From: Leucoraja erinacea
Taxonomy: Eukaryota
DNA length: 64,000 nucleotides
Assembly (NCBI RefSeq): GCF_028641065.1
Contig: NC_073401.1
Coordinates: 23,126,001 to 23,190,000, forward strand
Direction: 5' to 3'
In this document: positions 13,385 to 59,935 of the stretch, piece after piece
Numbering within the stretch: the first letter of the stretch is position 1
Layout of the letters: each line of letters opens with the position of its first letter
The notes under the pieces: model-generated
Database searches by the model: none
What the model was told of the DNA's origin: nothing
What the model saw: only the letters and a program-made list of their open reading frames with translations
Translations under genes and position numbers: made by a program

Positions 13385-15630
13385 ACAGGCACCAGTCAGC
13401 AAATGATCATAGACACATCACAAAAAACATGCCCTTTGGCTCTTTTCACTTGGACCATCTCCGACATCTCCCTCCCCTTTTTTGATCTCTCAGTCTCCAT
13501 CACAGGGGATAGACTACAGACTGACGTCTATTACAAACCCACTGACTCCCACAACTATCTAGACTATATTTCTTCCCACCCTGCTTCCTGCAAAGACTCT
13601 ATCCCCTACTCCCAATTCCTCCGTCAACGCCGCAACTGCGCCCAAGATGAGTTGTTCCATACCAGGACATTCGATTCGAGATGTCCTCATCCTTTAGGGA
13701 ACAGGGGTTCTCCTCTACCATCATAGATGGGGTCATCACACGCGGCTCCTCAGTACCCCGTAACTCCGCCCTTGCTCCCCCTCGCAGCAACAGGGACAGA
13801 GTCCTTATCTTTCACCCCATCAGCCGTTGCATACAACACATAATCCTCTTACATTTTTGCCACCTCCAACGGGATCCCACTGCTAGACACATCTTCCCAT
13901 CTCCACCCCTTCATGCCTTCCCCAGACGGTTCCCTCCACTACTCCCCGATTAGCTCGTCCCTTCCCATTCAAACCACCCAGGTACCATGCCCTGTAACTG
14001 CAGATGCAACACCTGTCCCTATAGACCAAACATAGACTGGGCGATCGTTTTGCTGGAACACCTTTGCTCAGTCTATCTGGACCTACCTAATCTCTGTGTT
14101 GCCAAATACTTTAATTCCCCTTCCCATTCCCACACTGACCTTTCTGTCCTAGGCCTCTTTCATTGTCAGAGTGATGTCAGAGTCAAACCGGCCCCAGACT
14201 GTGAGACTCGGCCCCCACCTCTCCTCCACTCGCAGGTTGAGTACCGGTTCCCCACAGGGCTGTGTGCTAAGCCCCCTCTTATACTGTCTCTACACCTACG
14301 ACTGTAGTCCGGCCCACAACAACAACCGCATCGTCAAATTTGCTGACGACACTACTGTGGTCGGACTTATTTCAAAGGGAGACGAGGCAGCCTACAGAGA
14401 GGAAGTCCTGAAGTTGACAACCTGGTGCTCAGAAAACAATCTGGCTCTGAACACCAGGAAAACAAAAGAGCTCATTGTCGACTTCAGGAGGCACAGCACC
14501 GACTTAGTCCCCCTACACATTAACGGCGAGTGTGTGGAGAGGGTCAACACCTTCCGGTTTCTCGGCGTCCATATCGCTGCTGACATCTCCTGGACGGACA
14601 ACACGACGGCGGTCATCAAGAAGGCTCAGCAGCGGCTGCACTTCCTGAGGGTCCTCAGGAAGCACAACCTGGACTCTAACCTGCTGCTGACCTTCTACCG
14701 CTCGTCCATCGAGAGCCTGCTGACATACTGCATTACAGCATGGTATGGCAGCTGCACCATGGCAGACAGGGAGAGGCTTCAGAGGGTAACCAGGACAGCG
14801 CAGAGGATCATTGGTTGCCCTCTCCCCTCCCTGATGGACATCTACACCTCCCGCTGCCTTAGCAGGGCAAAGAAGATCACCAAAGACAGCTCCCATCCTG
14901 CGTTTGGACTGTTTGACCTGCTGCCCCCTGGAAGGCGCTATAGGTGCATCAAATCCAGGACAAACAGACTCAGGAATAGCTGCTTCCCGAGAATTATATC
15001 TACCATAAATTCAAATCCACACATGCACTGACTACACCGCCCAACACGGACTTCCATCTGTATATATGTATATATGTATGTAGCGCCGTAGAATTTGTGC
15101 ACCTATTCCCCCCCCCCATCTCCCTTCTGTTTTGTTTTTCTGTTTCTTGTTTTTTGTGTAAAATTGTATGTATGCACTGAGTACGAGCAGCTTTCAGTTT
15201 CACTGTACATGTATAGTGACAATAAATGGCATATCATATCATTCATGCTAAACGCAAATTGGAGGAACAGCATCTCATATTTCACTTGGCCAACTTACAA
15301 CCCAGATTTCTCTAACTTCATGTAATCCCTGCATTCCCTCTCCATCCCTCCCCACTCACGTTGCACCAGCTTCTTGTTCTCACCTAGCAAACAGCTAACA
15401 ATGGCCCGTTTCCTTTATCCTCATTATTTTTTTGCATATCTTTCATTAATTTGTTCCATATCTCTCAACATCACTCATTTCCGTTTCCCGTGAGTCTCAG
15501 TCTGAAGAAGGGTCTTGCCATGAAATGTCACCCATTCCTTCGCTCTAGAGCTGCTTCCTGTACTGCTGAGTTACTCCAGCATTTTAAGTCCTTTTTCGGT
15601 TTAAACCAGTATCCTCAGTTCTTTCCGATA
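13385..15630 (+). mobile_element. Penelope-like retroelement 3' remnant (RT C-terminus, decayed GIY-YIG region, terminal repeat), split by a Rex/Babar insertion
   Basis: TWTISDISLPFFDLSV...TDVYYKPTDSHNYLDY.SSHP.SCKDSIPYSQFLR.RR.C is typical PLE RT C-terminus. The sequence CATTGTCAGAGTGA|...|GCTAAACGCAAATTGGAGGAAC is contiguous in the copy at ~42110. Decayed CTGAAGAAGGG...GAAATGTC core at ~15503. Confidence 0.8.
14177..15245 (+). mobile_element. 5'-truncated Rex1/Babar LINE with an uninterrupted RT C-terminal ORF (14171-15031)
   Basis: RPQTVR...TGSPQGCVLSPLLY.LYT.DC, KFADDTTVVGLI, NNLALN..KTKELIVDFR, KKAQQRLHFLR; 3' end GACAATAAA followed by (CATAT/CATT)n. Confidence 0.9.
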
Positions 15631-24755: not shown

Positions 24756-24840
24756 TCGGTGGCGCAGCGGTAGAGTTGCTGCCTTACAACACCAGAGACC
24801 TGGGTTCGATCCTGACTACGAGTGCTGATTGTACGGAGAT
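24756..24840 (+). mobile_element. tRNA-derived SINE head (HE1/V-SINE type), truncated
   Basis: A box GGTGGCGCAGCGGT, B box GGTTCGATCC; similar to the SINE at 45586-45884. Confidence 0.75.
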
Positions 24841-32597: not shown

Positions 32598-33127
32598 TCA
32601 GAAATCAACTGCTCTTAATTTCTTCATCTCTGCCTCAGTGAGTGGTTCCTTATTTAGCAATCGATTATGCAATTTTGCATGCTTGCCGATACCGAGTTTA
32701 GGAAGTCCACGGTTCAGTCCCTCCAACAAAACGCAAGCCTTGCAGAGTCCTTGGCTAGAAATGTAACCACACCGTGTGCACGTGCCTTGTGTGGGCATCT
32801 TCACATCCTCCTTCACAGAGAGGTTTTCACCAGAGTGAATCACATCCATAATAGCACTTGGCCGTATTGACTCCAAGTCTTTCAGGAAAGCACGCGCATA
32901 GCCCCTGTATGCATTAGGGGAATACACACATTCAGTGGAGAAGTAGTCCAGCTTTTTGAAGTAAGCATACAGCACTATTTCTTTCTCATAAGCATACTTG
33001 AGAGGTTTGCAACGAGGAATTGCCCCTTCACTATCCGTGGTAATTGCTGTACAGCGGCGCAGTCGAGCAATGTCTCCACGCAGGAAATTCATCAAGACGG
33101 TCTCAGCAATATCATCTGCATTGTGAC
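32598..33127 (-). CDS. CTU1: Cytoplasmic tRNA 2-thiolation protein 1, last coding exon
   Basis: Acceptor CATGCTCAG|GT completes [20 protein letters not shown]; [20 protein letters not shown]; C-terminal CxxC...CxxC; TGA stop. 496+530 nt gives 341 aa. Confidence 0.97.
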
Positions 33128-34148
33128 CTGAGCATGAAAGGAATAAAAGGAAGGTGCGGTTAATCGTTTAAACACACTGGTACACTTGTTCCTGGATGGA
33201 TGGATGCATTTCATCTACACGGCAGTTCACCTCTAGCTGGTCTTCAAAGTAAAAATAGTCAGACTATTAAGCCATCAGAGTACATAGAATTTTGGGAAAG
33301 CAGTGTTGGTGTGAAGTACTGGATTAGTTGAGGTTCAGCCATATAATATGATCCCTGTCAGATTAAGACTACACAACTAAAATAAATTTTTTTAAATCTC
33401 AAAAGCCTATCTGCACAAATATTTTTGGTGCCCATGTCTAAAATTAATTGTGAAAGCAAGCTTTGAGCATTCCATTATTTGATTATTTTCTATTTCTGTC
33501 CTTTAATGCAGAAATATTTCCAAAGCTTTAGTATCCCATTTATGCCGATGACATTTTACATTATTTAATCCAGATTTAACTGTAATTTAATGTAATGAAT
33601 GATTCTGGGAAGATTCCCCAATGTTAAAGCAAGTGCAAAATACTGTTGCTAAAACAGTGTAATTATCACCAAGTGGATCTATACCAGTAAATTTCCAGTT
33701 AGCCGGTTTGCTTCCATGTTTGTGGGGGAAATAACAAGTAAAGTGGACGATGAAGGACGAGAAAGATTAACATATTCCAATGGGTTTGATTTGGGGAGGA
33801 GAGGGTGGAGATAACAAATAATTCTACACATTTAATAGCTAGCATAATATGGAAACTGGCATAAATATAGAAGCAAATGACATTTAACAAAATAAGGCTC
33901 GAACTAATGTTAAAAATTACTTAGACTTTAGAAAAGAGAGAAGAAAATGTTACAGTAAGAACTATTCTTAAATTGAATCTACTCAAATAAAATAAATGGG
34001 GTTGTTCAAAATCTCATTAAAAAGATTAGAGGGGTAGAGATAGGAGAAATATATTTATTCAATGGAACTGGATCAAAGTCCCAGCAAATATTTTGAAACC
34101 ACTCAAAACGCATGCTTGTAGGAATGTAGGAAGTTATCAATGCCTTAC

Positions 34149-34644
34149 CTGTGCAGACCTTGTCTACTTTCAGCATCATGGCCCCACGATCAAGAGCTTG
34201 CCGTCTGAAGACCCCACAAAATGTGCAATTGTTCTTCAAACCAACTTTCCTCACAATCTGGTCCATTGTCCAGCCGTATAACTCTTCGTAGGAAATAATC
34301 TTCAGTGGCAGATCATACTGTTGCTGGTTTCTCTTTACTGTCTCCAAGGAATCATCACGATAACCACTGATGCCTTCGTCCACAGAAAGCAGCATCAGAT
34401 TTAAGCCATAATTATATCGATCATTTAAGACTTTCAAAACATGAGCTAGAACAGTTGAGTCTTTCCCACCAGAAGCCCCAATTCCAATGGTCTCTCCCTT
34501 CTGGAAAAGCTTGGCAGATACGATCATCTGATGCGTCTCCTCTTCGAAAGCCCAGAAAAAGCACTCTTTGCAGAGGGTGTGCCCTGTTTTGGGACGCCTG
34601 AGAACTGCTGCATTCTTGCCACAGCAGCTGCAGTGAACCGGCAT
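34149..34644 (-). CDS. CTU1: CTU1, first coding exon (exon starts at 34656)
   Basis: Acceptor TTTTTCCAG|ATTAGCTTCGAC ATG; MPVHCSCC...LCKECF, PP-loop [18 protein letters not shown]; phase-1 donor ACAG|GTAAGG. Confidence 0.97.
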
Positions 34645-34856
34645 GTCGAAGCTAATCTGGAAAAACAGCCAAAATGACTTGTTATGCGAGGCGCAACAAA
34701 GTAAAACGGAGCTTAATTGGAAATACAAACACATGGACTTTGTTCATCTTATTAGGAGCTGCACTGCTACTAGTGCCATGACAACTAGAGTCACAAATCT
34801 AGACCGATTGCTTTGGTTTGATTAGGAGGTTTGTAATTAGGAGGCAGCCAAGACCC

Positions 34857-34910
34857 AGGGTGGAAGATTGCAACCTTCACGTGGTCCGCCCTGTTTCGAC
34901 TAATGCAATC
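34857..34910 (+). ncRNA. Predicted HDV-like self-cleaving ribozyme, 54 nt
   Basis: P1 AGGGTGG/CCGCCCT (34857-63/34886-92), P2 GATTGCA/TGCAATC (34866-72/34904-10), P3 ACC/GGT, L3 TTCACGT, P1.1 G34893, vestigial P4 around TTCG, J4/2 CTAA with the catalytic-position C at 34900. Confidence 0.8.
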
Positions 34911-34994
34911 AACTCGACGTGCACAAAACGGAAGACAAATAGAACAAGTTGTCCAACAACTTTAGGCTGTGCACGCCACACGAAAGAAGAAGAA
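34857..34994 (+). mobile_element. ~135-nt retroposon (copy 1): minimal HDV-like ribozyme head plus Vingi/ingi-like tail
   Basis: Flanked by AGCCAAGA(T)CCCA duplications (34846-57 and 34994-35006); ends GCCACACG(AAAG)(AAG)n; near-identical to copy 2 at 50946. Confidence 0.85.
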
Positions 34995-36199
34995 GCCAAG
35001 ATCCCAGGGTCCTCGTTGCCTAGCGACCATAAAAACAAAGTGCGCGATTGAGGTCGGATGCCAATTGACCAATGTCGGACGTGCATTGCTTGGAAAATTT
35101 GAGGTTTTTCTCATATGTTTAATAAATGTGCAGGTTTTGGTCTTGACGCGTTTCAGGTATAATTTATAATATTTTTACACAATATGTTAAAAATTCCGGT
35201 AGTTCCGTTAGTTGGGTCACGAACTTGAACGAAAAAGCTCCTCGGTCCACAGCCTATATAGTGGTGTTTTACATAAGCACATAGAAATTCAGGAAATGGA
35301 AGGATCTGGATTACATGCAGGCAGAAGAGACCAGTTCAACTTGGCATAAGGCACAGACATTGTGGGGTGAAGGGCCAGTGCCTGTGCTGCTCTCTGTTAC
35401 GCAATCACAAAGCAAAAAATCTTCAGGCACTGCAGTCTTCTCATGCTCTAAACTAAGCATTTCATCTATATTAGATGGACCCATGAAAGTCTCACGCTCA
35501 TTTGTACATTTGTACCTCCACCCTTGCCAAGCACTGCAACCTCATGACAATGAACACAAATAGAACAGAAATCCAGTGCCATTTTGCAGTCTGGCCAATA
35601 ACGATCTGGTTGACATTTAAATGCCCTTCAAAATGGCCACTTATTTAAAAAGCTAAAATAAAACTGCACAGACATCTCAATACAAGCCTAGACACCAAAT
35701 TTGGAAAAGGTGTAGATACTTCTAGCTCAATTTAGACTGACATCTAAATTGGGAGAGTTGTCTCAGTCTGCAAAGGAAGCAGCTTCAAGGCAGCTCTATT
35801 ATGACCGTTGCGGATATCCTGTCCAACTGCTTGTCAGAATCAAATAAAATGTGATCATACTGTGTTACATAGTCACAATCAGTAATTTGAGGAATTCTCA
35901 ACATCAACCATAATGGCTCTCAACCAATGAAGGAGCATTGGATTATGTCAGTCACAGTTAAGGGAATCTTTGCTGATTACCACTGACCGTCATTCCTTAG
36001 ATGAGACATCAGTACTCCTTCATGTTATAGGCAGTACTCAAAGTAGCAAGGACAGAATTGACTTTGGGTGTGAGCCTTCAGGTAGCTCAGAGGCACCACC
36101 AATGACAACTCTGGCTTGGACCTGACGAACATAGCTGCCTGACATTCACAGGCAGGCAATTTAAAGAAATCGGATGTGTCAGTATTGCAGCTGAGCAAA

Positions 36200-38490
36200 G
36201 GGGACTACAGAGGCATGAGCTGGCTAACGTTTACTGGAAAGGAACCCTAGCAGGGGTGACGGTGGAACAGCTATGGCAGGAATTTCTGGAAAAAATCTGT
36301 AAGACGCAGGATCTTTTCATTCCAAAGATGAAAGATTCTAGGGGGAGAAAGAGTTGACTGTGGCTGACAAGGGAAGTCAAGGACAGTATAAATCTAAAAG
36401 GAAGAGAAGCAAAGATTAGTGGGAAGCTAAAGGATTGGGAAACTTTTAAAGAACAGAAGGGAACTAAAAAGACAATACACAGAGAAAAGATGAAATACGA
36501 AGGTAAACTAGCCAATAATATAAAAGTGGATTGGAAGAGATTCTTCAGTTACATAAAGAGTAAGAAATAGGCAAGAGTGGAAGCTGGGCCGTTGGAGAAT
36601 GGTGCAGGAGAAATGATAATGGGGAATAAAGAAATGGCAGAGTGGTTGAATAACTTGAATAGCATCAGTCTTCACGGTGGAAGACATTTGCAACGTGCCC
36701 GAAATTCAGGAGTCAGAGGTGGAAGTTAATGGAGTTGCTATTATTCGGGAGAAGGTGCTTGGGAAGCTGAAAGGGCTGAAGGTGGATAAGTCACCTGGAC
36801 CAGATGGAATGCACCCTAGGTTTCTGAAAGCGGTGGTTTTAGAGATTGTGGAGGCATAGACAGTGATATTTCAAGAATCACTAGTAGTGGTCCCAGATGA
36901 TTGGAAAATTGCCAATATTAGCCGCTGCACAAAAAGAGAGCAAAGCAGAATAGTGGGAACTATAGGCCAGTTAGACTGACTTTGGTGGTTGGTAAGATTT
37001 TAGAGTCCATTGTAAAGGATGAGGTTACGGAGTACTTGGAAGTTCACGATAAAATAGGCCAAAGTCAGCATGGCTTTGTGAAGTGGAGGTCTTGCTTGAC
37101 AAATTTGCTAGAATTCTTTGAAGAAGTAAATAGCAGGATAGACAAAGGAGAGTCAGAAAGCCTTTGATAAGGTGCCACACGTGAGGCTGCTGAGGAAGAT
37201 GAGAGCCCACGGTATCAAAGGGCAGATAGTAGCATGGATAGCAGGTTGGCAGAAAACAAAAAGTGGCAATAAAGGGGATTTTTCTGGTTGGCTGGCATTG
37301 ACTGGCAGAGCTCCATAGGGGTCGGTGCTGGGACCGCTACTGTTCACGTTGTATATTAATGATTTGGACGAGGGGATTGTAGGCTTTGTGGCCAAGTTTG
37401 TGGATTATATGAAAATAGGTGGAAGGGCAGGTAGTGTAGAGAAACCAGGGACTCTGCAGAAGGATCTATGGAGCGAAGGAAATAGGCAAAGTTTCGGGCA
37501 GAAACCCTTCTTCAGACTGAAGAAGGGTTTCGGCCCGAAACGTTGCCTATTTCCTTCGCTCCATAGATGCTGCTGCACCCGCTGAGTTTCTCCAGCTTTT
37601 TTGTGTACCTTCGATTCTCCAGCATCTGCAGTTCCTTCTTAAACACTCTGCAGAAGGAATTGTACTGGTTGGGAGAGTGGGCAGAGAAGTGGCAATGGAA
37701 TATAGTGTAGCAAAGTGTGGAGTCATGCATTTTGGTAGTAGGAATAAGGCATAGACCATTTTCTAAATGGGGAGAGAATCCAGAAATCGGACATGTAAAG
37801 GGACTTGGGAGTGCTGGTGCAGGATTCCAAAAAAGATAATCTGCAAGTCGAATCAGTAGTAAAGAAAGCAAACACAATGCTAACATTTATTTCCAAGAGG
37901 GTTTGTATACAAAAACAGGAACGTAATGCCGAGGCTCTATAAGGTGCTGGTTAGGCTGCATTTGGAATATTGTGAGCAATTTTGGGCACCATGTCTGAGG
38001 AAGGATGTACTAGCTCTGGAGAGGGTCCAGAGGTGGTTTACAAAAATGATCCCAGGAATGAAACACTATGATGAGTGTTTGTCTGCACTGGGCATGTACT
38101 CCCTGGAGAATGAGGGGAGACCTCATTAAAATATACAGAATTGTGAAAGGCTTGGATAGTGTGGATGTGGAGCATATGTTTCCACTAGTGGGAGAGTTTA
38201 GGACCAGAGGTCATAGCCTCAGAATTGAAGGACATTCTTTTAGGAAGGAGAGGAGGAGAAATTACTTTTGTCAGAGGGTGGTGAATCTGTGCAACAGAAG
38301 GTTGTAGAGGCCAAGTCAGTGGATATTTTTAAGGCAGAGATAGATAGATTATTGATTAGTACAGGTGTCAGAGGTTATGGGGAGAAGGCAGGAGAGTGGG
38401 GTTAGGAGGGAGAGATAGATCAGCCATGATTGAATGGCAGAGTAGTCTTTATGGGCTGAATTGGCTAATTCTACTCCTAACACTTATGAC
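36200..38490 (+). mobile_element. CR1 LINE, ~2.3-kb decayed ORF2 and 3' end, in CTU1 intron 1 (antisense)
   Basis: KSPGPDGMHPR.LK, SQHGFVK.RSCLTNLLEFFEEV, LGPLLFTLYINDLDEG...KF, LYKVLVRLHLEYCEQFW, RTRGHSLRI; many frameshifts; tail ATGACCTT. Confidence 0.92.
37465..37644 (+). mobile_element. Young Penelope-like terminal-repeat insertion with 51-bp fold-back and minimal hammerhead core
   Basis: 14-bp TSD ACTCTGCAGAAGGA (37451-64 and 37645-58); arms 37465-37515 and 37517-37567; core CTGAAGA-A-GGGT-TTCG-GCCC-GAAA-CGTT at 37517-37544. Confidence 0.85.
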
Positions 38491-42868: not shown

Positions 42869-43663
42869 ATGTGGTTTCTGACTGTTTTGCCAGCTGCTGA
42901 GAAATGCCGCTTGCTGAAGCAAATCTGCAGGAACTATTATTCAGCCATTGCTTCTAATTTCCCATTTGTTCCTTCTTGCCTTCCTTTGGACTCCATCGAA
43001 TTGGAGGATCTTCAGGAATTTCTGTTTCAGTCTAAGAAGCTGTTTGTGCTATCTGGAGCAGGCCTGTCAACGGAATCTGGTATTCCTGATTATCGCTCGG
43101 AAGAGGTTGGACTTTATGCTCGGACAACAAGACGGCCCGTTCAGCACCATGCGTTTGTCTGCTGTGCCAAGAGTAGGCAGAGATATTGGGCACGAAATTA
43201 TGTTGGCTGGCCACAATTTAGTTCGCGCCAGGCAAATGAAGCACACAAAGCTCTGAGTAAATGGGAAACAATAGGGAAGCTGCATTGGCTGGTGACCCAG
43301 AATGTGGATGCTTTGCACACAAAGGCAGGTAGCCAGTACTTGACAGAACTTCATGGCTGTACACATAGCGTGATCTGCCTTGGCTGCGAGAAGATAACAC
43401 CCAGGAGTCACCTTCAAGATGAATTTGCAGCTCTGAACCCTAATTGGTCTGAAGAAACACAAGGAATATTTCCAGATGGAGACGTTTTCCTGGCCGATGA
43501 ACAAATCAAACATTTCAATGTTCCCTCGTGTAAGAATTGTGGTGGTATCCTGAAACCCGATGTCACCTTTTTTGGAGACACAGTAAATAAAGAGAAAGTT
43601 AATTTTGTGTATGAACGTTTGACGGAATCTGATGCAGTTCTGGTGGTCGGCTCTTCTCTACAG
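42869..43663 (+). CDS. SIRT4: Mitochondrial NAD-dependent sirtuin 4, first coding exon
   Basis: Acceptor TTCCTAG|ATG; [41 protein letters not shown], catalytic ELHG, Zn ligands CLGC and [14 protein letters not shown]; donor CAG|GTGAGT, phase 0. Confidence 0.97.
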
Positions 43664-44148
43664 GTGAGTGGCTGAAATGACCAAAGACTTTTTATTGAAT
43701 ATGTTTGGATAATTTAGATAGATTGAGGAATATTCAATGGAAGCAAGTTATAACCAAAGTTATTTATGGTTTGAAGAGGGAATTCCAGGATTTAGGAACA
43801 GTGACAAAAAAGGAAAGGTGATAATATTTTTAAGTCAGGATGATGTGTCACATGAAAGAGAAACTACAGCTTGTAGTTTTCCATTGCCTGAAGCACTTGA
43901 CACTCATGGCAACAGCAATTGCAGCTTTGGCTCTTGGAATAGCTGTGCAGACTTGGTATGTAGGTTGTGGAGGGAATAATGTCTAGGGTGTGATGAGTGG
44001 GATGCCAGTCAAGTGGGCTGATTAGTCTTAGCTCTGTAAGGAATTTAGATCGTACCTTAGAGTTGGGTTCAGACACATTATGGATTGCACATGTCTGGCA
44101 GTGGCTTCAAACTGAAAATAATTAACTTTTTATGTTCTTTGTTAATAG

Positions 44149-45585: not shown

Positions 45586-45884
45586 AGTTTAGTTTAGAGA
45601 TATAACACAGCGGAAACAGGCCCACGGAGTCTGCAACGACCAGCGTTCTCCACACATTAACACTATCCTACTACTAAGGACAATTTACATGTACACCAAG
45701 CCAATTAACCTACATACCTATACATCTTTAGAGTACGGGAGGAAACCCAGGATCACAGAGAAAACCCACGCGGTCACGGGGAGAGCATACAAACTCTGTA
45801 CAGACAGCACCCGTAGTTGGGATCGAACCCGGGTCTCCAGTGTTCAAGCGCTGTAAGGCAGCAATTCCACTGCTGCGCCACCGT
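45586..45884 (-). mobile_element. Full-length tRNA-derived V-SINE (HE1-like) with CR1-derived tail
   Basis: Minus: GGTGGCGCAGCAGTGG (A box), GGTTCGATCCC (B box), GTGGGTTTTCTC...GGTTTCCTCCC core, GGGCCTGTTTCC...(CTAAA)n tail. Confidence 0.85.
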
Positions 45885-49500: not shown

Positions 49501-50945
49501 GGCTCCCCAAGTATCATACAGTAATGAGGAGTAAAATCTGAGCTTCAAGCTCATGCAGGTGGTTCCAATAAATAGGGGGTGTGGCTTCAACTGTCTGGAG
49601 TTTTCTGGGTGTACAGAAAGCATTAACTGCACTGCTGCAGCACTTCTCTCTCTCCCTCTCTGAGTGTGTGAAAGCTCACACACATACTGCATGCACAATG
49701 CATTTCCCATATAGAAGGCATGCATGCACCATGGAGCAGGAAATGTCTAGCTCCATGCATGCACTGTACTGTGTGCATGCACTATGTACGCGTGTATGTA
49801 TGTCTATGAACACCGGACAATTTCATTTTCTCTTACAGGGATGTGCAAGGTACAAGAGTAGAGTAATACACTGCTGGTAATATAATGAAAGTACTCTGCT
49901 AAATGTTTTCTCTACGAAAATGATGTGGAAATGACATCTTCCAATAAAATAAGAAAGTAACGACTATAGCAAATCTTATATAAATCCTCTGGCATATGGA
50001 ATAAATCTACTCATGCACCCCTCTGCTGAATGTATCAGTCTCTACTGATCTGCAGCTATGACATACATATTCATAAACTGCCAGATTGCTTGTGTGTATC
50101 ATACCACATCAAGAACCTTTTTTTTTCTTATGCTGACGCCTAATTACTGATTGGAGAAGACTCGGAGTTGGAGTGAGAAATGATCATGCAACAAGTCATG
50201 ACAGCCATGAAAGTTCACTCCAGTCACTGACCGAGATTTCAGTAAACAGCAATGCCGGGAAGTTGTGTGCTTAACACCAGATGGATCCATGATCCAAAGT
50301 ATTAAGAGTAGATTGCTAAAGGTGACATACATCATGCTAAATGTCAACCCTGTCATAAGACAATAGACTTGACCAGCATGGGTGAATCGGCGCTCACTAG
50401 TCATGGAAAAGGAACTAAACACCAAAAGTTATTAGCTAACTTACGTGAAGAAAACCGGAACAAGCATCATTCTTTACAAAAGAGTCAAGTAGTAAACCTA
50501 CTTCAGGCTCAGCCGCACCAGCAACTGCCCATGAACCACCAGATGCACCGTTTTGATCCTCTTTCAACTCGGGGACTACGTCAGCAAACCCCGTGCACAA
50601 TCACTCCAGCATCATTTGCGAGCAACACGGATACATTAAAAGCCAAATTACGGTGGGTATTGAAACAAGTGACAGCACACAATAGTTAAAAATCATCCGA
50701 GGACGCAGGTGAACTGTTCAGGATGATGTTTCCTGATGGCGAGAAAGCCTACGGGTTTCAGTGTGGTGAGAAAAGAACCTCCTATTTATCCGTCTTTAAT
50801 GATTTGTTGACATCACGTGTAAAAGCACAAGATCATTATGTCCTCCTCTTCGACGAGTTGCTTAACTCCAAAACGCACAAGCAGATGGACATATATGTCA
50901 GACTGTGGCATGGGGACAGAATTGTTTCCCTTTTCCTAGGATCCT

Positions 50946-51071
50946 GGGGTGGAAGATTGCAACCTTCACGTGGTCTGCCCGGTTTCGACCAATGCAATCA
51001 ACCCAGCGTGCACAATCAAATAGAACAAGTTGTCCTACAACTTTAGGCTGTGCATGCCATATGCAAGAAGA
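50946..51071 (+). mobile_element. 126-nt retroposon (copy 2): minimal HDV-like ribozyme head (50946-50999) plus Vingi/ingi-like tail
   Basis: Perfect 10-bp TSD CCTAGGATCC (50935-44 and 51072-81); removing it restores the transposase reading ...VSLF-LGSQFMGH; the element starts at ribozyme G1 after one extra T. Confidence 0.88.
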
Positions 51072-51278
51072 CCTAGGATCCCAGTTTATGGGGCATGGAT
51101 CATCTGAAATCATGCTGGAAAAATTCCTTATGGGTCTCGGTGATTTGCCATTGAGGAATCTAGTGCAAATCTCTATGGATGGACCAAATGTCAACTGGAA
51201 GTTTCACCGCCTGTTACAAGCAGAGGTAGGCTAGGTCTTGTTCATAATTTTTCATAATTATTTCATATTGGTCTAGAT

Positions 51279-52270
51279 CAGTGGTTCTTAACCTGGGGGT
51301 CGTGACCCCCATGTGGGTCATTTGGGGTTTTCTGGGGGTCATGAAGGGGTTGTAAATATTGTTGAGCCGATGTTTAGGAACCTAACAAAGGTACATACCA
51401 CACACAGTATTTTGTTCTCATCTGTGCGTATGTATACACAGGGCCTATGAGAGGTGGGTGCAGAGGTACAACGTACCCGGACCCGGAGTCCAAAAGGGGG
51501 CCCGGGAATTTCCTGAAATCTCAGAAAATGTTTGCATATATTTTGTGAAGACTAACATTCATATCTTATGTAAGCCTACATAGTTTTATACAGGCACGGA
51601 AATGGCTATCAAAACATGGGGGACACACACACAATTTCTTGGTGGCCATGCGCGCGCATGAGCACACACACGAGGCTTCGGCCATGGGCCCTGTGGACGG
51701 TAACATCGGGAGCTGATCAGGTTGGTAGACCGACTCCGAACTCCAGCAACAGCAGCTTCGTCCGCCCCGAATCCGCCCATTCGCGGGGCCTTTCATCGGG
51801 AGCCTCGATGCAGCAGTTTGATTTTAACCCCGCCGGGCGCTGAAAAGCCCCGCGAATGGGCTGATTCAGCCGTTAGAAAGCGTCTGATAAAGTGCACATT
51901 ACAAAACATTGGGTGGGATTGCCCCCTCGCCCCCCCCCCCCCCCTCAGGATTACCGCCCATGGTTTTATACACCGTAATTCGTAGAAATTGTGATCTATA
52001 ATAAAGCAGGGAATTTTAACAAGCGGGTGTGTGGTCGGGGTAACCTGATTAAAAGAGGGAAAAGGGGAAGACCCATCACTACTGAGGTTCCCTGTAGGAG
52101 GGGAGCACTAGGACCTAACAGAGTCAGACCACGTGCTGTCAGCATGGTGGAGGTTGTGGGCCAGTGCTGCATCTGGAGCTCTGGTGAGTTGACGGCTCAG
52201 GCCCGCTGGTGGCTGGTGGAGAGGCGAGGGTTGGCGGAGTCGCTGGTCGAGGCCCGTGGTGAGTCGAAGT
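51279..52270. mobile_element. Nested non-autonomous DNA-transposon fragments replacing the central part of the hAT transposase
   Basis: Charlie-type start CAGTGGTTCTTAACCTGGGGGTCGTGACCCC at 51279; second CAGGGCC-type start at ~51439; GC-rich hairpin 51769-51867; right boundaries unresolved. Confidence 0.5.
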
Positions 52271-57568: not shown

Positions 57569-58085
57569 CTGCAAGATGAGAGAAAAGCAACAGAGACGGC
57601 ACTTTAAATTTATCAAAGTAGTTGTGAAGCACTTGACCCAAGGTGCGTGATTTTTCTTAAAGTCAAAAACGCAAAACTTCCCAGCTCCTTCTGGCAAGGT
57701 CTACTTTTCTTTCCAGGGCATTCATTTTTTCTGAACACAAAACTTTGGGTTTGTCAATACAGGTGACCCCATATTATGGCTGTTCAGACAACAGAAATTC
57801 ATATATCACTACCCAAAAATTTAAGATATAGAATAAAATTCGCTCTCACAAAATTTAAGTGAAAAAAGTAAAATCAACACAAATTTATTTATTTAAACTC
57901 ATGTTTCTGACATTTGTGTAGATGACGTGGTTTTGTGTTACAGGTAATTGCTATCTGGAACATTTCCTAGCAACGCAACCTCATTGTGATGTGGGGTTTG
58001 CCTGCAACCGCTCCCACGCCACACCGTCAGCCACTAAGCTAAAACAAAATGCATTTGTGGTTTTGCTTCAAGCATGGCTACTTAC

Positions 58086-58327
58086 TGTGCAGAGGTTGGA
58101 CTTGTCTTTCAGAGGGGTTTTGAGCGGCAGATTACGGAAGGATAGAATTGGTAGTGGTGGTGGTGTTGGAGGAGGAGGGGGAGGGGGAGGAAGAAGAGGA
58201 GGGGGAGGAGCAGGAGGAACCGTAGCAGCCAATACAGGTCGGCAGGAACCCGTCTTTGTAGAATTCTCGGCCTGCTCCTTCTGCCTCTTTTCAGCTAGTC
58301 GCTTAGACGTTCTTGGTCCTTTGGCCT
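58086..58327 (-). CDS. PRR11-like protein, coding exon 3 (polyproline)
   Basis: TTTTATAG| ... ACA|GTAAGT; 242 nt, phase 1-0; (E)AKGPRTSKRLAEKRQKE...PPAPPPPLLPPPPPPPPTPPPLP...KTPLKDKSNLCT. Confidence 0.85.
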
Positions 58328-58352
58328 CTATAAAACACAAACATCCCAATGA

Positions 58353-59935
58353 ACTGGAGTCAATTATTAAAGAGGTAATAATGGGGCATTTGGATAGCAG
58401 TAAAAGGATTAGTCCAAGTCAGCAAGGATTTATGAAAGGAAAATCATGCTCAGCTAATCTTCTGGAATTTTTTGAGGATGTGACAAGTAAAATGGGTGAA
58501 GGGGAGCCAGTGGATGCAGTGTATCTAGACTTTCAGAAAGCCTTTGATAAGGTCCCGCACGGGACACTGGTGACTAAAATTAGAGCACATGGTATTGGAG
58601 GTAGGGTGTTGACGTGGATAGAAAATTGGTTGGCAGACAGGAAGCAAAGAGTAGGAGTGAACGGGTCCTTTTCAGAATGGCAGGCAGTGGCGAGTGGAGT
58701 GCCGCAAGGCTCGGTGTTGGGGCCGCAACTGTTTACCATATATATTAATGATTTGGAAGAGGGAATTAGGAGCAACACTAGCAAGTTTGCGGATGACACA
58801 AAGCTGGGTGGCAGTGTGAACTGTGAAGAGGATGTTAGGAGGTTGCAGGGTGACCTGGACAGGTTGAGTGAGTGGGCAGATGGGCAGATGCAGTATAATA
58901 TAGATAAATGTGAGGTTATCCACTTTGGTGGCAAAAACAAGGGGTCAGATTATTATCTCAATGGGGTTAGGTTAGGTAAGGGGGAGGTACAGCAAAAACA
59001 AATTAAGGGGGCCAGATTATTACCGCCATTCAAATGATCATGGGGTTAGTATCCCGTTAGGTACCCCCTGATCCCCTTAGGGAGGGTACATCTAACTCCC
59101 TCTTAAAAGACTTGTGTGTACCCTCTGTTGTACAGTTCCAGAGATTCACCACTCTCTGTGTGAAAAAAGTTGGCGCACAGGTTTTAAAGCATCCTTAAGC
59201 TGTGACCCCTTGTCCTGGACTCCCCAAATGGAATCCTGGCCTTCATAACAATTTTGTAAGTTTCTTGGGTGTCCTTTCAGTGAAAGTTGGGAGTACAGCA
59301 GGCAGAGCTAATGGGTTCTTCTAACAAGAGGATTTGTATTAGGGGTTCTTCTGCTGTTTAGGGCTCTGGTAGACCACATCTGGAGTATTGCATACAGTTT
59401 TGGTCTCCTAATTTGAGGAAGGACATCCTTGTGATTGAGGCAGTGCAGCGTAGGTTCACGAGATTGATCCCTGGGATGGCGGGACTGTCAGATGAGGAAA
59501 CATTGAAAAGACTAGGCTTGTATTCACTGGAGTTTAGAATGATGAGGAGATATCTTATAGAAACATATAAAATTATAAAAGGACTGGACAAGCTAGATGC
59601 AGGAAAAATGGTCCCAATGTTGGGTGAGTCCAGAACCAGGAGCCAGTCTTAGAATAAAGGGGAGGCCATTTAAGACTGAGGTGAGAAAAAACTTTTTCAC
59701 ACAGAGTTGTGAATTTGTGGAATTCCCTGCCACAGAGGGCAGTGGAGGCCAAATCACTGGATGGATTTAAGAAAGAGTTAGATAGAGCTCTAGGGGCTAG
59801 TGGAATCAAGGGATATGGGGAGAAGGCAGGCACGGGTTATTGATTGGGGAAGATTAGCCATGATCGCAATGAATGGTGGTGCTGGCTCGAAGGGCCAAAT
59901 GGCCTCCTCCTGCACCTATTTTCTATGTTTCTATG
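58353..59935 (+). mobile_element. CR1 LINE, 5'-truncated, with a scrambled segment at ~58995-59355
   Basis: QQGFMKGKSC, YLDFQKAFDKVPH, SGVPQGSVLGP.LF.IYINDL, KFADDTKLGG; 3' tail TTCTATGTTTCTATG. Confidence 0.92.

Follow-up and report, generated by a model that had tools for sequence, protein, structure and literature searches.

How a very short retroposon without RNA polymerase III (Pol III) boxes could keep the same 5′ end from copy to copy is the question raised by a repeated element in the genome of the skate Leucoraja erinacea. The window analyzed here, i.e., the whole stretch of 64,000 nucleotides (nt), corresponds to positions 23,126,001 to 23,190,000 of contig NC_073401.1 (RefSeq assembly GCF_028641065.1, forward strand). 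It contains two copies of the element, copy 1 starting at 34857 and copy 2 at 50946–51071 (all positions are those of the window). We consider it probable that the element is a SIDE-like, promoter-less retroposon that depends on a long interspersed nuclear element (LINE) and trims its own 5′ end with a hepatitis delta virus (HDV)-like ribozyme devoid of the P4 helix, the cleavage being predicted from the fold. That the element is a short non-autonomous retroposon is supported by observation: it is approximately 126–139 nt long, has defined ends, contains no open reading frame (ORF), and is flanked by target-site duplications (TSDs) of at least 11 bp in both copies.

The candidate ribozyme at the head of the element

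The first 54 nt of copy 1 can be divided into AGGGTGG-AA-GATTGCA-ACC-TTCACGT-GGT-CCGCCCT-G-TTTCGA-CTAA-TGCAATC, which is the order of the nested double pseudoknot of the hepatitis delta type. A script that counts pairs found P1 (7/7, one of them T·G), P2 (7/7), and P3 (3/3) to be complete, and the core letters are a C in L3, a G after the 3′ strand of P1 that would give a one-pair P1.1, and a C four bases before the 3′ strand of P2. By sequence and pair count, all of the double-pseudoknot parts that a previous sequence-only reading of this stretch had placed at 34857–34910 are therefore present in the order described. Copy 2 is 86% identical to copy 1 over 121 nt, and its head has the same L3, the same G, and the same TTTCGA. 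In both copies, the C at the catalytic position of J4/2 is followed by N-A-A, and in copy 1 this segment aligns with the CUAA of the Rfam model RF02682. The parts of the two copies are as follows.

34846–34856 (+): 5′ TSD of copy 1, AGCCAAGACCC, one T fewer than the 3′ TSD
34857–34910 (+): head of copy 1, candidate minimal (P4-less) HDV-like ribozyme; predicted cut 5′ of 34857; RF02682 covers the same span
34857–34863 (+): 5′ strand of P1, AGGGTGG, partner 34886–34892; AGGGT also occurs in the target
Between the 5′ strands of P1 and P2 of copy 1 (+): J1/2, AA
34866–34872 (+): 5′ strand of P2, GATTGCA, partner 34904–34910; no variant at ≥ 8% in four runs
34873–34885 (+): P3, ACC (34873–34875) and GGT (34883–34885), closing L3 TTCACGT; C34878 is the candidate P1.1 partner of G34893
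34886–34893 (+): 3′ strand of P1, CCGCCCT (34886–34892), and G34893, placed by the pair count
34894–34899 (+): P4 remnant TTTCGA, with one possible U-A pair around UUCG
34900–34903 (+): J4/2, CTAA; C34900 at the catalytic position, 34901 variable in the family
34904–34910 (+): 3′ strand of P2, TGCAATC, placed by the pair count
34911–34945 (+): linker of copy 1; 34914–34936 differs between subfamilies
34918–34975 (+): 3′ module; in the centroid fold, a stem (34918–34925/34968–34975) around a hairpin (34946–34952/34956–34962) with the loop CCA
34983–34993 (+): (AAG)n tail of copy 1; the last AG (34994–34995) is ambiguous with the TSD, and loose ends lie behind 34992–34996
34994–35010 (+): 3′ TSD of copy 1, AGCCAAGATCCC, and AGGGT, which the element's first bases share
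50935–50945 (+): 5′ TSD of copy 2, CCTAGGATCCT
50946–50999 (+): head of copy 2; P1 6/7, P2 7/7, P3 3/3, J4/2 CCAA
51000–51071 (+): rest of copy 2, comprising the linker, the 3′ module, and a short tail of AAG
51072–51082 (+): 3′ TSD of copy 2, CCTAGGATCCC, which encodes LGS as the 5′ TSD does

The frequency with which such a fold arises by chance was estimated with a strict descriptor, consisting of the helices, a C in L3, a G after the 3′ strand of P1, and a C 3–5 nt before the 3′ strand of P2. It matched at three start positions in the real window, namely those of the two copies and 52149. Among 60 windows simulated with a first-order Markov model, 37 had no match at all; the mean was 0.47 start positions per 128 kb, and the chance rate was 3.6e-6 per position. 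The third match (52149–52206) is G-rich and has none of the family core letters, and with about 0.47 chance matches expected per window it was set aside as a probable chance match. Helices by themselves are not rare, since a loose descriptor limited to them matched at 13 distinct start positions in the window. Furthermore, the start of the fold coincides with the 5′ end of the family, which was marked independently by public contigs.

When the 74 nt around the head of copy 1 were compared with Rfam, only one of 4227 families matched at E ≤ 10, and this was RF02682, an HDV-type ribozyme (a bacterial model). Model positions 1–74 were aligned on exactly 34857–34910, including ACCU..ACGUGGU and CUAA. 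The E-value was 0.19 over all families and about 4.5e-5 for RF02682 alone on the 74 nt, and 1.2 on 451 nt. For the whole window, the E-value mode gave 11 weak matches, none of them HDV-like. Taken by themselves, these statistics suggest an HDV-like head and do not prove it.

Family boundaries, variation, and insertion sites

To place the two copies in their family, public contigs (runs X1 and X2) and reads (runs X24 and X23) were compared with 34790–35060 at 90% likeness. The element was matched by 8687 contig pieces in X1 and 7528 in X2, and the summed depth, which is not a copy number, reached 2.9 million on the element versus approximately 24 in the unique flank. The high copy number that had been proposed from the two copies in the window is thus borne out. 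In three further organisms, the runs contained 0.21–0.25 of a 651-nt query, which is approximately the share of the element in that query.

In all four runs, loose ends occurred before 34858 (197 contigs in X1, 193 contigs in X2, 879 reads in X24, and 1083 reads in X23), and at the other end they lay behind 34992–34996. The consensus of the flanks was AT-rich and weak, with an agreement of 0.34–0.46 (0.34–0.37 for the approximately 190–200 contigs per run). The clustering of copy 5′ ends at the predicted cleavage site, named in the sequence-only reading as a check, was found in both genomic sequences and complementary DNA (cDNA). The limits given there for the element, 34857–34994, were nearly exact; family similarity starts at 34858, and the 3′ boundary lies at 34993–34995. 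The closing pair of P1 is A-T in copy 1 and G/G in copy 2, and the last letter of the loose-end consensus is a G opposite T34892 in 4/4 runs. Because the upstream consensus ends in G in each run and copy 2 also has G, base 1 of the family is read as a G that would form a G·U closing pair with T34892. A G·U wobble that closes P1 at the cleavage site is typical of the HDV-like ribozyme class.

Five of the 54 positions of the head vary at ≥ 8%.

34864: J1/2, A or G
34880: L3, C>T, the sole variant at ≥ 8% in P3-L3
34888: 3′ strand of P1, G>A in 13–24%, changing T·G to T-A
34898: P4 loop, variant at ≥ 8%
34901: second letter of J4/2, T, with G in about a third, or A

None of these variants breaks a pair, and none lies in P2, in P3, at C34900, or at the two As of J4/2 (34902 and 34903). 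The chance of at most one of five variants falling among the 34 paired positions is p = 0.057, and three of the five variable positions are CpG sites. In the two copies and the per-position variant shares of this one family, the changes in helices are all single and pair-preserving, namely G>A at 34888 and C>T at the position of 34887 in copy 2. Behind the head, the linker differs between subfamilies: within 34914–34936, the depth dips, loose ends occur at 34927 and 34936, and there is an 8-nt gap relative to copy 2. The 3′ part is conserved; variants that are common there affect the loop (34955), change G-C to G·U (34974, C>T), or fall in the gap between the stem and the tail (34979–34983). 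We presume that the 3′ module may be the recognition site of a LINE reverse transcriptase.

The reading from the letters had pointed out a tail of approximately 80 nt with a shared motif, its (AAG)n end, and direct repeats on either side of the element; all of these are present, with the motif CAAATAGAACAAGTTGTCC in 2/2 copies within the approximately 80 nt 3′ of the head. The claim that the tail reads like the last codons and stop of an ORF did not survive, because the 8-nt linker gap between the copies breaks any shared frame. In copy 1, one frame is open as far as a TAG at 34963–34965, but the gap in copy 2 leaves no shared frame, and this candidate was dropped.

The flanking repeat of copy 1 is AGCCAAGA(T)CCC and that of copy 2 is CCTAGGATCC(T/C). 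The first five bases of copy 1, AGGGT, are also found in the target, both in the 3′ duplicate and in the empty site, and therefore cannot be assigned uniquely to the element in this copy; microhomology may have supplied them from the target. One X2 contig from a related organism (organism B), with a single-copy depth of 27.3, represents the empty site of copy 1; in it, 34849 is followed by four other letters and then by 35000. Copy 2 lies within an ORF (50690–50944 and 51073–51231), whose left flank ends in ...DRIVSLFLGS and whose right flank begins with LGSQFMGHGSSEIML...ISMDGPNVNWKF in an open frame. Around the insertion the ORF reads ...YVLLFDELLNSKTHKQMDIYVRLWHGDRIVSLFLGS and, on the other side, LGSQFMGHGSSEIMLEKFLMGLGDLPLRNLVQISMDGPNVNWKF..., so that the frame is continuous across copy 2; the 11 duplicated bases encode LGS twice, showing that the insertion splits this ORF. 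Pfam gave no name for either piece. The ORF looks like that of a hAT-kind transposase-derived protein.

Two observations concern the targets themselves. First, the targets of both copies (34846–34861/34994–35010 and 50935–50947/51072–51084) contain GATCCCAG beside the 5′ end of the element, with 7/8 letters identical at a fixed register (p ~4e-4); family-wide, the flank consensus is AT-rich and of low agreement. This sharing may be a target preference, an effect of 5′ microhomology, or chance. Second, the 3′ flank of copy 1 (34999–35035) is itself repeated, with summed depths of approximately 4,000 (X1) to 23,000 (X2) versus approximately 24 in unique sequence, and at 34999 and 35016 nearly all of the contigs have letters other than those of the window. 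Another short repeat thus borders copy 1.

If the two copies were fragments of a larger repeat or units of a tandem or satellite array, the flanking direct repeats would belong to that repeat and not to insertion events. The likeness of the two TSDs through GATCCCAG and the repeated flank at 35000–35035 speak for such an explanation. Apart from this, however, the two copies have unrelated flanks, and the weak, AT-rich flank consensus of the contigs, the empty site in organism B, and the continuous ORF frame across copy 2 all speak for insertion. We regard the larger-repeat explanation as largely refuted and very improbable.

RNA ends and rival explanations for the 5′ end

RNA that starts at the first base of the element was found in X23, which consists of single-cell, template-switch cDNA. 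Among its 2814 matching reads, the 1083 with loose letters before 34858 gave a consensus (agreement 0.61) that ends in ...GCAGAGTGAATGGGG, given also as ...AGCAGTGGTATCAACGCAGAGTGAATGGGG. We take this to be the template-switch oligo, which ends in GGG, plus one extra G. Because the switch oligo precedes base 1, cDNA synthesis ended at base 1 of the element. The seven Gs before TGG (four before GGGTGG) are too many for strand invasion by the GGG of the oligo, and the ends are therefore taken as true RNA 5′ ends. The results indicate that unit-length RNAs starting at base 1 exist. The same run has more plus-strand than minus-strand reads over the element, e.g., 1152 versus 450 at 34880–34889. 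In addition, 221 reads of X23 run from 34985 into approximately 29 As (agreement 0.91), either because oligo-dT primed on the A/G-rich tail or because the unit-length RNA is polyadenylated.

Under the ribozyme explanation, copies that lie in host transcription units would be transcribed passively within longer RNAs, which is the situation seen for most of the reads. The first 54 nt would fold as a minimal, P4-less HDV-like double pseudoknot that cuts just 5′ of base 1, and this cut would leave an RNA starting exactly at the first base of the element, where RNA 5′ ends are found. The 3′ module and the (AAG)n tail would then be taken up by the reverse transcriptase of a "stringent" LINE, which would use target-primed reverse transcription to copy the RNA at a nicked target site, and insertion would yield TSDs of at least 11 bp, as observed. 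Because the RNA begins at position 1 of the ribozyme, each new copy would have the whole ribozyme and would need no promoter of its own. We infer that the element is an internally deleted ("bipartite") retroposon of the class without long terminal repeats (non-LTR), derived from a LINE.

The principal competing explanation is that the element resembles an ordinary short interspersed nuclear element (SINE) with an internal or upstream promoter, that base 1 is simply the transcription start, and that the fold is either a coincidence or the dead relic of a LINE's 5′ ribozyme from which P4 has been lost. Searches for Pol III features argue against this. ARAGORN found no tRNA in the window, Rfam detected no likeness to tRNA, 5S, 7SL, or snRNA in the element, and scans with the A-box and B-box consensus sequences, with up to two mismatches, found no sense-strand site in either copy and only one antisense B-like site (50981–50991). 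On these sequence grounds, a tRNA-like or Pol III head was ruled out, and the head is not of a known Pol III type. From the earlier description of a promoter-less, SINE-like retroposon, the part that stands is accordingly a short non-autonomous retroposon (TSDs, empty site, split ORF), and the stated absence of Pol III boxes was confirmed for the sense strand at ≤ 2 mismatches. In the same scans, which thereby had a positive control, paired A and B boxes with 0–2 mismatches and approximately 40–50 nt apart were found at 24760/24803 (+) and 45870/45819 (−). The corresponding regions, 24760–24813 (+) and 45819–45880 (−), are likely tRNA-derived SINE copies, and ARAGORN calls no tRNA there. Other features are also difficult to reconcile with an accidental fold: the strict descriptor would fall on one given base by chance at a rate of only ~3.6e-6, the only Rfam family that the head resembles is an HDV-type model, which it matches over the full length, and the common variants spare the pairs and leave the C at the catalytic position unchanged.

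A number of results weigh against the ribozyme explanation. In the fold itself, base 1 of copy 1 is an A and not the G of the family consensus, P1 of copy 2 has 6/7 pairs with a G/G mismatch at the closing pair, and P4 is reduced to at most one pair, so that activity of so small a form is assumed by analogy with other minimal ribozymes. The pattern of variation gives weak support for the fold, and is due in part to CpG decay and to descent from few masters. With 16.6 bits, RF02682 falls far short of its gathering threshold of 44, no family reached its gathering threshold in the whole window, no HDV-type match was found around copy 2 at E ≤ 10, and the models for HDV proper and for the CPEB3 ribozyme gave no match at E ≤ 10 on either 451 nt or 74 nt. 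The nested minimum free energy folding was ordinary (z = −0.29 and +0.07), a result of little weight because the method omits pseudoknots. In X24, an ordinary oligo-dT RNA run, 95% of the matching reads continue into unlike flanks, the 879 reads that cross the 5′ boundary are about as many as the listed reads that cross the 3′ boundary (183 + 155 + 646), and no pile-up of read starts was reported. It follows that most of the copies found in mature poly(A) RNA are passengers that remain uncut in longer host transcripts; the same observation supports the read-through idea, which requires copies to lie inside such transcripts. Lastly, cDNA ends alone do not distinguish a 5′-OH from triphosphate or capped ends, and an internal promoter would likewise give RNA that starts at base 1.

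For the promoter explanation, several of these points count in its favor: the cDNA 5′ ends fit a start site equally well, the Rfam score is below threshold and the folding energy ordinary, and the poly(A) RNA shows neither a depletion of reads that span the 5′ junction nor a pile-up of read starts. Furthermore, the head of the trypanosomatid element L1Tc has been reported to be both a promoter and a ribozyme (PMC3383444). Taking the two sides together, we judge a promoter with an accidental or relic fold to be rather unlikely.

A third explanation combines the two, with a dual head like that of Pr77/L1TcRz of trypanosomes, in which the same 54 nt would promote transcription and self-cleave, and 5′ ends would arise by both routes. 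It has a precedent in L1Tc and NARTc (PMC3383444 and PMC3185411), and the plus-strand excess in X23 could mean that element-specific sense RNA is made. No promoter motif was identified in the box scans, however, and the strand excess is equally well explained by stable cleaved products or by the design of the library. A head with both functions therefore seems improbable to us, and we retain self-cleavage from read-through transcripts as the preferred explanation.

That explanation requires a partner LINE, and the failure to find one (Vingi or other) in the window or in the collections scanned is a further point on the negative side. A blastn-short comparison of both copies and the tail with the window returned only the two copies, with nothing longer than 14 nt elsewhere, so that the 64 kb contain neither a partner LINE nor old or truncated copies. 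Head and tail scans of metagenome contigs and scans of viral and prokaryote contigs gave no further copies and no LINE with the same tail. Two LINE reverse-transcriptase fragments are present in the window, at 14171–15031 (RVT_1 and PF09004) and 57922–59037 (RVT_1), and they have no head or tail in common with the element. The proteins closest to the latter are unnamed ENA proteins (93% and 82%), and the closest named ones are elasmobranch proteins from Hypanus sabinus (77%), followed by Chiloscyllium, Pristis, and Callorhinchus, in keeping with the cartilaginous fish of the earlier reading.

Three other features of the window were noted. Just upstream of copy 1, 32598–34734 (−) is host-gene-like, with a match to the PP-loop family below the Pfam cutoff (25.1 versus 27 bits) and a zn-ribbon_14 piece. 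Also near copy 1, 42869–43675 (+) is a host-gene-like ORF of the Sir2 family with 268 aa. At 37451–37582, a long, near-perfect hairpin gives matches on both strands to several microRNA precursor models, all of them below threshold (mir-577, 44.5 bits; mir-722, 38.3 bits); an inverted-repeat element is more likely here than a microRNA gene.

Relation to known ribozyme-headed elements and meaning

Comparison with known systems shows that the parts of this element have precedents. The closest in architecture are the SIDEs (Eickbush and Eickbush, 2012; PMC3414825), in which an R2 ribozyme is joined to the 3′ end of R2 or R1, and which are not transcribed by Pol III, cleave in vitro, and are rare and confined to ribosomal DNA (rDNA). 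Like them, the skate element has a 5′ HDV-like head joined to what is probably the 3′ terminus of a non-LTR retrotransposon; it lacks a Pol III head and an ORF, and would rely on co-transcription and on the reverse transcriptase of a partner. Hybrid SIDEs have TSDs of 14 bp, and the copies here have at least 11 bp. The P3-L3-P3′ region is also near that of R2: primers for the catalytic region of R2 contain ACCTCCTCGTGGT versus ACCTTCACGTGGT here, i.e., 11/13 by eye. In contrast, SIDEs occupy fixed sites in 28S rDNA, are rare, and have full-size ribozymes shown to cleave, whereas the skate family is dispersed, very abundant, and found in a vertebrate, with a candidate ribozyme that has virtually no P4.

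A second parallel is with the trypanosomatid elements NARTc, RIME, and SIDER, which are abundant, dispersed, and non-autonomous, have an HDV-like head (the first ~77 nt there), and are released from long co-transcripts (PMC3185411, PMC4035085, and PMC3383444). L1Tc and NARTc cleave at +1 and have a one-pair P1.1, and upstream bases that extend P1 inhibit their cleavage (Sanchez-Luque, 2011; PMC3185411). The trypanosomatid elements differ in that they belong to another host kingdom, have a larger ribozyme and a head that is also a promoter, and have a known partner (L1Tc/ingi). No sequence relation of the head to these elements was detected, the comparison having been made by Rfam only.

With regard to LINE parentage, Kojima (2018; PMC5786205) noted that only RTE, Ingi, Vingi, and R2 had been reported to make bipartite, ORF-less derivatives, and linked these to 5′ ribozymes. 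Such derivatives join the extreme 5′ end of a LINE to its extreme 3′ end and a microsatellite tail, and the retained true 5′ end is tied there to self-cleaving ribozymes. Vingi is not among the clades listed with a ribozyme in PMC5786205; by analogy, a Vingi parentage, as the earlier reading had proposed, is possible, given that Vingi is among the clades that make bipartite derivatives.

In size, the head resembles the minimal delta-type ribozymes from metagenomes and the theta ribozymes of gut phages, which share the P4-less nested double pseudoknot of approximately 50–60 nt (Kienbeck, 2024; PMC10879173). That paper states that "Minimal drzs lack the P4 domain" and leaves their origin and function open. 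Those ribozymes are metagenomic elements without an assigned origin, or phage elements beside tRNAs, whereas the candidate described here heads a vertebrate retroposon (PMC10879173). The mammalian CPEB3 ribozyme is similar in another respect, having an HDV-like fold in transcribed non-coding DNA of a vertebrate. It also has the same L3 heptamer as the head, with similar letters after the 3′ strand of P1 and in J4/2. It differs in being single-copy and intronic with a full P4, and, as mentioned above, its Rfam model gave no match here.

Ribozyme-headed non-autonomous retroposons are therefore known already from fly rDNA and from trypanosomes, and the skate family would work like a SIDE or a NARTc but differs in its host, spread, abundance, and minimal ribozyme. 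Within a limited literature collection, we found no paper on a genome-wide, very abundant, ribozyme-headed vertebrate family with a 54-nt ribozyme, and a search on the L3 heptamer returned nothing relevant. These searches agree with the earlier statement that the family had not been described in cartilaginous fish.

A more far-reaching proposal is that the family lives actively as a parasite on host transcription, with no promoter of its own and with a P4-less ribozyme that cuts in vivo, and that the "mammal-only" CPEB3 ribozyme is the domesticated head of such an ancient retroposon. We regard this as doubtful. The link to CPEB3 comes from the unpaired core letters of the head, which are those of the CPEB3 ribozyme. 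If cutting in vivo were true, the family would be the first eukaryotic home and function for minimal HDV-like ribozymes, and there would be very many self-cleaving sites inside the transcripts of a vertebrate. Confirmation of cleavage would mean that a minimal delta-type ribozyme and a LINE tail suffice for a successful mobile element, and would provide thousands of natural sequence variants of a single small ribozyme. One would then also have to ask in how many host transcripts embedded copies make a cut, and the origin of intronic HDV-like ribozymes such as CPEB3 could be explained along a route open to testing.

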